A DNA stretch of 63,612 nt, counting the filler, from Olpidium bornovanus S191 (taxonomy: Eukaryota > Fungi > Olpidiomycota): NCBI GenBank assembly GCA_017911155.1. It is 26 parts of 26 records of this genome, joined end to end, with 100 filler letters (N's around TTAATTAATTAA, not from the genome) between each part and the next. Parts side by side here need not be neighbours in the genome. Positions count along the whole stretch, not along the records: positions 44,781 to 48,079 come from JAEFCI010001870.1; 25 more parts are not named here. One strand, 5' to 3'. The notes under the pieces were generated by a model. That model saw only the letters and a program-made list of their open reading frames with translations, ran no database searches and was not told where the DNA came from. Positions 44,681-48,179 of the stretch are shown piece by piece. Positions within the stretch are counted from its first letter, which is position 1, and every line of letters starts with the position of its first letter. The translations under genes were made by a program, and so were the position numbers.

Positions 44681-44896
44681 NNNNNNNNNNNNNNNNNNNN
44701 NNNNNNNNNNNNNNNNNNNNNNNNTTAATTAATTAANNNNNNNNNNNNNNNNNNNNNNNNNNNNNNNNNNNNNNNNNNNNCATGAAAACGGCCGTCTGAC
44801 GGCGTAACTAAACTTCGCTTATCACCAACGACTCTTCCCTCTCCACAACAACGCCGCGAGCGCGAAGCTTTTGACGATAGCCAGTCGGAGAATTCT

Positions 44897-47430
44897 TCAA
44901 ATCTCCGCGCCCCTCCCCTTCTGCCTCATCTGCCATTCCCACAAGCTCCTCGGCTCGACGTGGCTGCCCCTGGACACCACAAGCGCGCTCTCTCCTGGAA
45001 ACGTCGGACGGTGCTCGGGACCCACGTTGCCGACGACGAAGTGGGACGCGAACGGTGGGGACTGAAACGTGCATCGCCTTCCACAGGTCCAAAACACAGA
45101 AGAAAAAAAAAGGAAGGAAAAAGATATTAGACCTCAACCTGTGTTCGCAAGTTGGCTTTCGCTACAAACGGCGAGAAACTTATTGATCAAAACAGCGAGA
45201 GTAGCAAAGAAAACAAAACAAAAAAAAGAGGAAAGAAAACAAAAGAAACCGAACGCGCCGTCTAAAACGTACCGACACTCGCAATTCCAGTACACGTGGA
45301 AAGCACCTGGTCGCATCGGAACAGACGAGAGTTGAGCGGCTTTTCCGCACAAACCCTCCTTTCTCGCAGCGCCGGGTAAGACGCTTGCGGGCCGTTCGCC
45401 CGCTCCTCCCCTCCCCCCCCCCACCCCCCGGTGATTGCGCGAAAGAGAAAACGACGCACCGGCCCACCCGTGACCGGTGCCGAGGTAGCTTCTGTTCATG
45501 CAGTTCAATTGGCCGCCGACGCGGACGCAGTCGTACAAGATTCCCGTCGCCCAGCGGTGGTGCGGCCCGGAATCGGCAAAGTCCTGCTCGCTGATGCAGT
45601 CGACGAAGGCGTTTGGCCCCCGGACCTGAAGAAATACATCCGTACCCCCCCCCCCCCCCCCCCCCCCCAACCCAGCGCGCAGGCCTCATTAGTCCACCAT
45701 CCGGAGATCGCGGAGCAAGAGAAGTCATAAAGCAAAAGGTCTAAATTTGGAACCCGATTCCCGTCTCGTGCATGTCCTCCCCGCACCTTGCTGCTTGTGA
45801 CGAACGCGTGACGCGCCAGCCGCGATCGGCACGTCCGGACGAGGATTTCCGTCCCATCAATCTCAAACCCGTAACGCCGGCCGCCTTCGTATCCGACAAA
45901 TATTTGGATTTGGCCGCTCTGTCAGCCACCCGTGTCCCACCTTGCCCGGCGGTCAAACAAAAACGTATTTCGAAAACCCTTACCAGCCAGTTTCGAGACT
46001 GCCCGCGAAGAATCGCAGTTTTTAAGGCGTGCAACACGCGGCAGAAATGAGTAGAATGCAATTTTCGACGATGAAACGTCCGAGAAACGACGTCTTAAGA
46101 GGCTAGAACCTACCAGGATCGATGAACAAGCAACTTAATATTGTGCATCTGCGCGCACAATAACCCGCTCTGAATCCGGACAGGAAGTGGGTGGCAGTCA
46201 CGCTGCGGACCCAGCAGTCCTGACAGTGATCAAGCTGCACGGCGAGCTTTCCGCGTGCACAAGGAAACCCGGCGCCAAAGTTACACCCGGGACCGGCCAG
46301 AGTTGCTTGCTCGCTTCACGGCTATATTTTCCAACACCCGCCCCACCCCCTCCACCCCGGTTTCCAAGACGTTGACGGCCTCTTATCGGGCTTCCTGACC
46401 TTCCGGTCAGCACACAATAAAAATAACCCACAGTGCAATGGTCCTCGTCGTCTCTCTCGCGTCCGAGCTCGTACTCTGAAACGAGTTTGATGTTTTCCAC
46501 GCCTATCATGTTCGCGGGCACGGTTGGCGTCCACGCGCACTTGTAGACAACGCCCCCTCCAAATGTGTCTCTGAGGTCCATTGCCAGCCCCGGTTCCACA
46601 TCGACGTACTCCCTTCCGCACGGTTCTCGCCCCATTCCAACAACTACCCTCTCTTGTTCTATGCCGTACTTTTTTGCGTCCCACTGGGTGCTGGGTGCGC
46701 CGTTGTCGGGCCGTGGTGGGATAGCGTCCATCCCGATGGCGTGAATCCACTCAGACGTGCCCGGTCTGGATACGACCAGATAATCGCCGACTTTCAGACC
46801 GGGCACTCTTTCGGCGATGTGAAGGCGGCGCGAGCCCACGGGCACATGATTGTCCGTGACCGGCACCTTTTTTGATATTGGCTGCAGTTTACGTCCGGCG
46901 GGGTCTGACCCGACGGCGATCAGCGTCCTCCGGGACCTGCCGGTGGCTATGATCACGGCGCCATCTTCGCCCCGGAGGACAACCCCCGAGTGTCGGACAC
47001 TGATGGACGACGAGACGCGGTAAATGCCTGCGCGCAGCAGGACTGTGCCGCGGAAGTAACCCCTCGGGCTCAGGGAGCCGGCCGCGTCGATGGCAGACTG
47101 AATCCGCGCGGCGTCGTCGCCGCCGCCGCAAGGTGACGCGGGGCACACCGTGCTCGCCACGGGGGGCAGGGCCGAGGGCAGGCGCGACCCCGCGCGGAAA
47201 CCGCAGGTGGCGAAGTCGGGGAAGCGGTTCCCGTACGCGTCGCGCACATCGAAGGGGTCGTTCGGGCCGTTCACAGCAGCTGCGCCGGGGGACGCCGTCT
47301 CCTTTTCCGGAAGCAGCGGCCCCGTTTCGCCGCAGTCGCCACCCGCATCTGCGTTCGCCGAAGGGCTTCCAAGGCACCCGTCGGCCAACGACGAGGCAGC
47401 GGCGACCAGCGCTTTGACTACCCGTTCCAT
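44897..47430 (-). CDS. Pectate-lyase-fold (right-handed beta-helix) protein of a bacterial-type family, at least 5 introns; possible extra 5' exon near 47690-47900
   Basis: PDFATCGFRAG; GDDAARIQSAID; GTVLLRAGIY; GVVLRGE; EDHCT|LAVQLDHCQDCWVRSVTATHF; GGRRYGFEIDG...RHAFVTSSK|VRGPNAFVDC; SGPHHRWATGILYD; NRSYLGTGHGWAG|AFHVYWNC; QSPP...SLWEWQM*. Confidence 0.8.
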
Positions 47431-48179
47431 CGGTTGGCGTTTACGCGTTCAAGCGCAAGTCACTCTGCGAAAGCACTCAGTCCTGTACGCGGGCCGGCCC
47501 GCTCGACGACCTTTGATCCACTCGCCGATTATTATTATTATTATTATTATATTTTTTTTTTTTTTTTTTTTTTGTGAGGGGAAGTTTGTCGGAACCGCTG
47601 TGGAATGGGAGCCCGCCACGTCAGGCGGACGGTCCGCGACTGCGTCACATCGGTGAACTCGCGCGTTGCGTATCTGCAAAACCTTGGTCATCCGGTTAGT
47701 TTACACAATTCAGAATAAAATTGCAAGTACAAGATGTTTTCCGTGTTGGTGGCCAAAGGCTTATAACTAAGTAGAAGGACAAAAGACAGAAGGACGGAAG
47801 GAAGCCGGAGGTAACGGCACTTCCCTCCGCCAGGCCCACGCTTTCTCTGGTGCAAAGAACGAATGGACTTCACGTGCTTTGCACACGCCACATGGCAAAA
47901 CAAATAAGCGATTCCGCAAGAAACTCCAAAATATTCCGACCACGGGACTGATGTTTATCATGTGGAAAAGCAACTGCTGGCATCAAGTTGGGCCCCACAG
48001 GGGAAACAAACACCCCTCTCCACACAATATACGCCACTGTCGGCAGCCCGAATTATTATCAACCGACGGGATTAGTCGANNNNNNNNNNNNNNNNNNNNN
48101 NNNNNNNNNNNNNNNNNNNNNNNTTAATTAATTAANNNNNNNNNNNNNNNNNNNNNNNNNNNNNNNNNNNNNNNNNNNN

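Follow-up and report, generated by a model that had tools for sequence, protein, structure and literature searches.

How did a gene for a protein of bacterial type come to sit, split by introns, in a fungal genome, and what might its product do there? These questions are raised by positions 44897 to 47430 of the DNA of Olpidium bornovanus S191 analysed here (the window, meaning the whole stretch of 63,612 nucleotides). An earlier note on this DNA had read these positions as an intron-containing gene of the pectate-lyase fold, encoding a polysaccharide-degrading enzyme acquired from bacteria. Taken as a whole, the results are best explained, with fair probability in our judgement, by a beta-helix protein resembling carbohydrate enzymes, which belongs to a bacterial family and entered fungi by an old transfer. 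The gene is the only one on its contig, a complete sequence of 3,299 base pairs that fills positions 44781-48079, and it is encoded on the minus strand. Its first exon is a 100% match to BJ554DRAFT_4338, which is annotated as "MAG: hypothetical protein, partial [Olpidium bornovanus]", and transfer RNA and Rfam scans of the whole piece returned no match.

Whether the gene is a working eukaryotic one can be read from the contigs of four public runs that were aligned to this piece, of which X1 and X2 belong to one study (P1), X4 to a second (P2), and X8 is a soil metagenome. Transcript-like contigs from the two studies define seven exons and six GT-AG introns. The coding sequence runs on the minus strand from the ATG at 47430 to the stop codon at 44897-44899, exactly the range given in the earlier note, and the exons add up to 1,626 nucleotides, an open frame of 542 codons that encodes 541 residues and closes with the stop; the phases agree at every junction. 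X1 and X2 provide one contig each, of 1,866 and 1,901 nucleotides, covering 44781 to 47510 and 47519, respectively; in both, five blocks bounded by CT..AC (GT..AG in the orientation of the gene) are skipped, and a sixth joint carries 14 extra letters. The joints in X4 are identical and are found in shorter contigs. Since six introns are removed exactly within one contig, complementary DNA is the only reasonable reading of the X1 and X2 contigs. The gene is real, spliced, expressed and nuclear. A continuous protein had been spliced across at least five GT-AG introns in the earlier note, which also argued for a gene embedded in a eukaryotic genome rather than a bacterial contaminant and named transcript data as the check on splicing; the contigs from both studies bear this out, with six introns present in the DNA and removed from the transcripts. 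The motif series listed there also holds, as six-frame translation and tblastn with five homologues place all of its members on the minus strand in the order given, across frames and with stops between them.

The one element that had been overlooked is very small. The 14 extra letters map to 45985-45998, at the joint 45885/46114, in three runs, and with one ambiguous G they make up a micro-exon of 15 nucleotides (exon 3, 45984..45998), which is preceded by AG and followed by GTAAGG. Together with the split codons on both sides, it encodes V-S-K-L-A, corresponding to the family loop D-P-V-S-x-I-[ST]-G that is present in all homologues. It is missing from both the earlier note's model and the model of the National Center for Biotechnology Information (NCBI). 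A direct joint between exon 2 and GGRRY was considered and rejected, as it leaves a gap of five residues relative to the homologues at the place where the transcript contigs show the micro-exon.

Read along the minus strand, the transcript starts with a 5' untranslated leader (47431..47519), whose contigs end at 47510 and 47519, that is, 80-89 nucleotides upstream of the ATG at 47430, with no other ATG in the leader. Exon 1 (46432..47430; 999 nucleotides, 333 codons) holds an N-terminal hydrophobic helix that is likely to be a signal peptide, a disordered linker (approximately residues 19-54), the GDD..RIQ cap, the first turns of the beta-helix, an inserted beta-barrel (approximately residues 185-300) and a D-E-D-H motif. 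After intron 1 (46247..46431; 185 nucleotides, GTGGGT..AG, phase 0), exon 2 (46114..46246; 133 nucleotides) extends from L-A-V-Q to F-I-D-P and ends in phase 1, and the micro-exon is flanked by intron 2 (45999..46113; 115 nucleotides, GTAGGT..CAG) and intron 3 (45885..45983; 99 nucleotides, GTAAGG..AAG). The motifs GGRRYGFEIDG and RHAFVT are found in exon 4 (45787..45884; 98 nucleotides), which is followed by intron 4 (45626..45786; 161 nucleotides, GTGCGG..CAG, phase 0) with a long C/G homopolymer run inside. Exon 5 (45460..45625; 166 nucleotides) carries GPNAFVDC, SGPHHRWATGILYD and GTGHGWA and ends in phase 1, where intron 5 (45307..45459; 153 nucleotides, GTGCGT..CAG, phase 1) begins. The short exon 6 (45273..45306; 34 nucleotides), encoding A-F-H-V-Y-W-N-C-E-C, is separated by intron 6 (45078..45272; 195 nucleotides, GTACGT..AAG, phase 2) from the coding part of exon 7 (44897..45077; 181 nucleotides including the stop), in which T-F-Q-S-P-P and P-R-S-L-W..Q form the C-terminal helices. 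The 3' untranslated region occupies 44781..44896, and the transcript contigs extend about 45 nucleotides past the end of the piece.

The public gene model departs from this structure. BJ554DRAFT_4338 (507 amino acids) is mis-spliced: it retains introns 1 and 5, omits exons 2-4 and part of exon 5, ends within intron 6, and has extra upstream residues that no transcript contig supports. A second candidate that we discarded was the peptide VFWTC just upstream of exon 7, which a tblastn alignment offered as the WNC block; it lies in the polypyrimidine tract of intron 6, and the true WNC is in the 34-nucleotide exon 6. At the same boundary, one low-depth contig of X4 (depth 2.9) uses an alternative acceptor 16 nucleotides inside exon 7 (joint 45061/45273, with 45061-45077 affected), which would shift the reading frame and may be a minor splice variant or an assembly error. 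Long homopolymer or simple-repeat runs occur at 45634-45680 and 45197-45254, in introns 4 and 6, and at 47520-47584, just upstream of the transcript start; they comprise C/G runs some 20 letters long, tracts rich in A, and a (TAT)n repeat that leads into a T run, and the read contigs appear to be broken at them.

To what kind of protein does this gene belong? In the following, searches, the fold model and tree rows for Olpidium use exon 1 (333 residues), and the remaining exons were compared piece by piece. An exhaustive search with exon 1 retrieved 2,157 clusters (50% identity) with E<=1e-3, of which 1,292 reach E<=1e-10, and phmmer E-values of exon 1 alone against members reach down to 1e-40 to 1e-74. 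When bacteria were scanned with each species represented by one genome, at least 533 loci were confirmed, and the 80 that were retained represent at least 13 bacterial phyla, including Verrucomicrobiota, Latescibacterota, Bacteroidota, Planctomycetota, Armatimonadota, Acidobacteriota, Binatota, Bacillota, Myxococcota and Lentisphaerota. The Olpidium protein belongs to a very large, unnamed and overwhelmingly bacterial beta-helix family, which agrees with the earlier note, where the motif series was called typical of an uncharacterised family of Bacteroidota and other soil bacteria.

Olpidium retains the strongly conserved columns of this family along its whole length, among them the motifs GDD..RIQ, GGRRY, RH, GPN.F, SGPHHRW, GxGHGWAG, WNC, Q.PP and PRSLY. 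In piecewise profile alignment, the exons cover 83 of the 88 family columns conserved at 85% or more, and 76 of those 83 are identical in Olpidium; the seven that differ are conservative changes. At 45043, in the Q/S-N-W/F block of exon 7, the window has a His in place of the near-invariant Asn of the family; the transcript contigs of three runs and a soil relative read Asn there, so that the His is a strain variant or an assembly error. This soil relative (X8) is represented by genomic pieces 90-99% identical to this gene, for example at 46356-46951, which takes in part of intron 1, and this degree of identity implies that close relatives of the source organism occur in soil samples. It differs from the Olpidium gene by 16 synonymous and 7 non-synonymous changes, which indicates purifying selection. 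Elsewhere in the family, the bacterial protein P0086 (955 amino acids; L004:8001-10868) contains the whole domain twice in tandem, and its two copies are mutual nearest relatives in the tree.

Existing database models do not capture the family. Pfam and NCBIfam scans gave no model above its cut-off for the Olpidium protein or any close member. The "Pectate_lyase_3-type start" of the earlier note corresponds to no more than a sub-threshold match to PF12708 (Pect-lyase_RHGA_epim, formerly Pectate_lyase_3), with 13.3 bits (E 0.073) for exon 1 and 23.9-26.0 bits for homologues against a cut-off of 27; the match is confined to the N-terminal cap region (the GDD..RIQ..ID helix). DUF4955 (PF16315, cut-off 25) scores 12.9 bits with the Olpidium C-terminal open reading frame and 16-17 bits with most homologues. 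A few distant members pass for DUF4955/DUF6298 (PF19815, cut-off 28.1), namely P0084 with 28.4 bits and P0066 with 64.1 bits; a literature search on DUF4955 and DUF6298 found no papers.

The fold was modelled for Olpidium exon 1 and for P0007, a full-length bacterial member 41% identical to exon 1. The P0007 model, built from a 116-row alignment, has a mean predicted local distance difference test score (pLDDT) of 94.5 and is a right-handed parallel beta-helix, for which Foldseek and VIA-align return right-handed beta-helix proteins only. The top Foldseek match is the Klebsiella K1 capsule lyase (E 6.6e-12), and the Z scores fall smoothly from 29 to 23 over 50 entries. In the exon 1 model (pLDDT 84.7), the first turns of these beta-helices are matched by residues 90-180 and 300-333, and residues 185-300 form a separate beta-barrel like the insert of the K1 lyase and of GH110 enzymes; its best match is again the K1 capsule lyase (Z 11.0, 187 aligned residues). 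Both models thus fall in the beta-helix superfamily, as the earlier note had expected. As modelled, the fold is clear and the nearest enzyme family is not singled out.

The closest structural likenesses illustrate this. The K1 capsule-specific polysaccharide lyase (PDB 7w1c/7w1d) and the phage LKA1 tailspike gp49 (4ru4) have, like the family, a right-handed beta-helix with a barrel inserted near the N-terminal turns, and 7w1c aligns with the P0007 model with a VIA-align Z of 26.9 over 335 residues. However, their identity to the family is 10-18%, with a root-mean-square deviation (rmsd) of 4-5 A, and they are trimeric phage tailspikes with extra domains; kinship to the K1 lyase at the sequence level was not detected, the family profile giving E 0.98 to the related K1 capsule depolymerase 9k4a. 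The highest Z scores belong to the alginate epimerase/lyase 8jaz (29.1) and to AlgE4 (2pyg) and AlgE6 (5lw3; 28.6-28.8), with an rmsd of 2.3, 271 aligned residues and 16-19% identity. The N-terminal cap and first turns of exon 1 align to this type with 27-29% identity over about 100 residues, and the family profile matches it weakly (E 0.04-0.06) in the N-terminal 60 residues only, but none of these proteins has the inserted beta-barrel. GH28 polygalacturonases and rhamnogalacturonase A (1bhe, 1rmg) share the fold, with Z 25.6-27.4 and 12-13% identity. The family conserves G-H-G-W with L-Y-D about 20 residues earlier, a matter of sequence conservation, the comparison with GH28 being one of overall fold (Z 27.4, 12% identity). 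Finally, PL29 is the family of BT3328 of Bacteroides thetaiotaomicron, a chondroitin/dermatan/hyaluronan endo-lyase (PMC9067506). Bacterial members of our family, which are likewise secreted glycan enzymes by prediction, match the NCBIfam BT_3328 model (NF058554) over about 200 residues with E 1.6e-9 to 2.6e-11; nevertheless, the scores of 31-42 bits stand against an equivalog cut-off of 1,100 and involve only positions 407-629 of 840.

Which eukaryotes have the gene? Across three large searches, the named eukaryotic members were restricted to Olpidium, Mortierellomycota (at least 10 genera, with two gene-copy groups) and two species of Basidiobolus. In Basidiobolus and in Linnemannia/Mortierella each gene has 3-5 introns, and the gene of Linnemannia zychae adjoins genes for PRP1 and G6PD; with their introns and eukaryotic neighbours, the fungal homologues are genuine. 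The intron sets of the two Mortierellomycota groups are entirely different (L007:6001-8358, L008:1001-3701, L009:1001-2886), one having three conserved introns and the other introns at P-D-F-S-Q|V and G-P-H|D-R-W, and in Haplosporangium the protein P0239 (1,072 amino acids) also carries leucine-rich-repeat and F-box domains, a fusion that probably reflects the merging of gene models. The closest eukaryote-like relative is P0092, a metagenome protein encoded without introns on a 2.25-kilobase contig (L005:203-2062). Its signal peptide is of eukaryotic type, it contains N-glycosylation sequons, and its Ser/Thr-rich tail ends in a hydrophobic stretch resembling a glycosylphosphatidylinositol (GPI) signal; a search with it against 5.8 billion proteins found no close kin.

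In the tree of exon 1 (106 rows, LG+C20 with posterior mean site frequencies, PMSF), Olpidium groups with P0092 with supports of 93/82 (ultrafast bootstrap/Shimodaira-Hasegawa-like approximate likelihood-ratio test), and this pair groups with Mortierellomycota with 94/89. Basidiobolus adjoins that group in a position that is not settled, and all eukaryotes stand together in 71% of the bootstrap trees. In a tree of full-length columns (100 rows, Olpidium again as exon 1), all 17 eukaryotic rows form one group (77/47, in 82% of the bootstrap trees), and the order of Olpidium, Basidiobolus, and P0092 with Mortierellomycota agrees with the accepted order of species, with weak support. Evidence independent of exon 1 comes from an intron and from a pair of motif states. 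In Olpidium, intron 5 interrupts, in phase 1, the Gly codon that follows G-H-G-W-A, and the main Mortierellomycota group, including Mortierella sp. GBA30 and Linnemannia zychae, has an intron in the same profile column and phase. F-H after G-W-A-G-[AV], in exon 6, is found in none of 352 bacterial rows and in 22 of 34 eukaryotic ones, and F-Q before [SD]-[AP]-P, in exon 7, in none of the 352 and in 29 of the 34; Olpidium has both.

These results speak against an acquisition by Olpidium alone, which the earlier note had implied: intron-bearing homologues exist in many Mortierellomycota and in two Basidiobolus, and the 94/89 grouping with P0092 and Mortierellomycota, the shared intron and the F-H and F-Q states all tie the Olpidium gene to them. 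A recent transfer from a soil bacterium to the Olpidium lineage only, independent of the Mortierellomycota and Basidiobolus copies, would fit the fact that exon 1 reaches its highest identities with proteins from bacteria or metagenomes (40-46%) and not with those of Mortierellomycota (34-37%), as well as the failure to find a close fungal relative. We consider it very unlikely, given the six introns, the micro-exon and the fully eukaryotic gene structure, the placement of Olpidium with other eukaryotes in the trees, and the intron and motif states that it has in common with Mortierellomycota. Moreover, no bacterial match exceeds 46% identity, so that no recent donor is visible.

For the fungal genes together, which form a small eukaryotic group beside a huge bacterial diversity and are missing from most fungi, a bacterial origin is the best explanation; the pattern is that of horizontal transfer, in which a small recipient group, patchy among fungi, stands beside broad diversity in the donor domain. 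The tree is unrooted, so that the direction of transfer is deduced from this distribution. Homologues spread across fungi with a tree of vertical descent had been named in the earlier note as evidence to the contrary; this applies in part, as descent within the fungi looks vertical, and the wider distribution still favours bacteria as the source. A bacterium would have donated the gene before the split of Olpidium and Mortierellomycota, or else the gene would have passed later from fungus to fungus with the intron already in place; after its transfer it would have gained introns, and it would have been lost from most other fungi. A more specific version of this history is possible, though in our view doubtful: that the family is an unclassified one of polysaccharide lyases or glycosidases, of which one branch passed from bacteria to fungi before Olpidium split from the terrestrial fungi, to be kept by Olpidium and Mortierellomycota over hundreds of millions of years.

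What would the protein do in such a fungus? The hydrophobic stretch upstream of the gene (about 47770-47830), suggested in the earlier note as a signal anchor, is not supported as such: no transcript contig covers 47531-48079, which places this open reading frame outside the messenger RNA in those samples. The upstream flank (47520..48079) consists of the (TAT)n repeat and T run at 47520-47584, then 0.5 kilobases without transcript-like coverage. The protein itself starts with M-E-R-V-V-K-A-L-V-A-A-A-S-S-L-A, modelled as a helix and followed by the disordered residues 19-54, and other members of the family have clear signal peptides at their start. The Olpidium protein is probably secreted by means of this N-terminal hydrophobic helix, a view that rests on the modelled helix and on the signal peptides of other members, its own signal peptide having been judged by eye and by analogy with the family.

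The surroundings of the bacterial genes point to carbohydrates. The gene neighbourhoods of the best matches are plainly bacterial, with LptC/LptD, with ribosomal protein S16, TrmD and L19, or with a sulfatase, BNR_4 and a sugar ABC transporter. At two Opitutaceae-type loci (L002:9504-10991 and L014:4423-5985) the gene directly downstream encodes a pectic acid lyase (PF09492), and BNR_4 neighbours occur in one locus of Verrucomicrobia and one of Bacteroidota (L003 and L059). Other bacterial neighbours encode sugar-binding proteins, a member of the enolase superfamily, a hybrid two-component regulator and a secreted F5/8 type C protein, and F5/8 type C domains are fused to some family members. 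With respect to the polysaccharide-degrading enzyme acquired from bacteria that the earlier note proposed, the carbohydrate role fits both the fold and these neighbourhoods, while a transfer specific to Olpidium does not stand.

The secreted protein would cleave an extracellular, probably acidic, polysaccharide, and the chemistry would be done by a conserved set of Asp, Glu, His and Arg residues in D-E-x-H (at the end of exon 1), GGRRY, RH, PHH, LYD and GHGW, proposed as catalytic from their conservation. Our tentative preference is for a lyase acting by beta-elimination, a lean that comes from the architecture resembling the K1 lyase, the weak link to PL29 and the many conserved Arg and His residues; a hydrolase is a considerable possibility, and an epimerase or a non-catalytic binder seems rather unlikely. 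It could also be asked if the protein is an enzyme at all, or a beta-helix protein of the surface that serves in adhesion, such as attachment to a host or substrate. The fold matches include beta-helix adhesins, PfbA among them (Z 25.7), and at the end of the sister sequence P0092 a Ser/Thr-rich linker is followed by a hydrophobic tail resembling a GPI-anchor signal. Against this, charged and aromatic residues are nearly invariant across more than 100 diverse members and are kept in Olpidium, as is typical of an active site, and the bacterial neighbours of the family are genes for glycan degradation and sugar uptake, which makes a purely adhesive role quite improbable.

Several points weigh against the reading of a carbohydrate-enzyme-like protein transferred anciently from bacteria to fungi. 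With respect to function, the enzyme role of all members of the family is a prediction from fold and sequence, the flat list of fold matches does not fix the type of reaction or the substrate, and the NCBIfam BT_3328 model that supports the lean to a lyase had no match in Olpidium exon 1, P0092 or Basidiobolus. With respect to origin, exon 1 is closer in identity to bacterial proteins than to Mortierellomycota, as given above, and we roughly estimate that one shared intron out of six would arise by chance in about 1% of cases, a figure that a bias in insertion sites could raise to perhaps 10%. The support of the eukaryotic group is only moderate (77/47), its branches are all long, and long-branch attraction could inflate the grouping. 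Basidiobolus has neither the F-H and F-Q states nor the shared intron, so that its lineage may have branched off earlier or acquired the gene separately. Lastly, the assembly was obtained from non-axenic zoospores washed off cucumber roots and binned on tetranucleotide composition (PMC7865070); the species label rests on this binning, and that the contig is from Olpidium is not proven.

Two further alternatives build on these points. Olpidium, the P0092 organism, Mortierellomycota and Basidiobolus may each have received the gene independently, the single eukaryotic group being a long-branch artefact; stems and tips of all the eukaryotes are indeed long (0.9-1.5 changes per column), their group appears in 71-82% of the bootstrap trees, and Basidiobolus, with none of the signature states, has a different set of introns. 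Yet the site-heterogeneous LG+C20 PMSF model still recovers the eukaryotic group, and the F-H and F-Q states with the shared intron are hard to obtain through independent transfers, so that we judge this unlikely for the group as a whole; for Basidiobolus alone, an independent transfer is plausible. Alternatively, the contig may come from another eukaryote in the zoospore wash, binned together with Olpidium by its base composition. The binning procedure itself, the small size of the contig (3.3 kilobases with a single gene) and the presence of related pieces, 90-99% identical, in soil metagenomes are compatible with such a source, but near-identical spliced transcripts recur in runs that bear a single organism label and come from at least two studies, which fits a recurrent associate such as Olpidium, and nothing in the data points to any other named organism. 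We therefore give this possibility very little weight, and an old transfer from bacteria into fungi, Olpidium included, is still the explanation that we favour.

Early-diverging fungi are already known to contain genes of bacterial derivation that have gained many introns. A survey of 44 genomes described 17 such genes with six or more introns (Evol Lett 2024, PMC11291939), and these resemble the Olpidium gene as genes for bacterial-type secreted proteins that gained several introns in an early-diverging fungus. In contrast to them, the Olpidium gene is apparently common to two or three fungal phyla; Olpidium is outside the 44 genomes of that survey, and its text makes no reference to the present family, the words "pectate", "pectin" and "Olpidium" being absent from it. 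The phenomenon is therefore known, and ours is a solid if fairly ordinary example of a gene of bacterial type long present in early fungi, from a family that is worth characterising.

For the locus itself, the public gene model BJ554DRAFT_4338 can now be corrected, and exon 3 illustrates that a micro-exon of 15 nucleotides can restore a conserved loop. For the family, a very large group of secreted beta-helix proteins without a Pfam or NCBIfam model above threshold is a sensible target for enzyme discovery. For Olpidium, an obligate root parasite that also transmits plant viruses, the gene is a candidate for a secreted glycan enzyme, for which the earlier note proposed a use on host cell walls or mucilage; its presence in soil saprotrophs (Mortierellomycota) argues against a host-specific role. 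On the doubtful reading of an unclassified lyase or glycosidase family given above, the enzyme would act on an acidic glycan from algae, plants or the biofilms of bacteria. An intron-bearing gene common to Olpidium and Mortierellomycota would, if confirmed, be a further character tying Olpidium to the terrestrial fungi, and an example of an old transfer fully adapted to the genome of its fungal host. If, as in that doubtful reading, the gene was acquired before Olpidium split from them and was kept since, it would also provide a datable marker for the transition of fungi from water to land.

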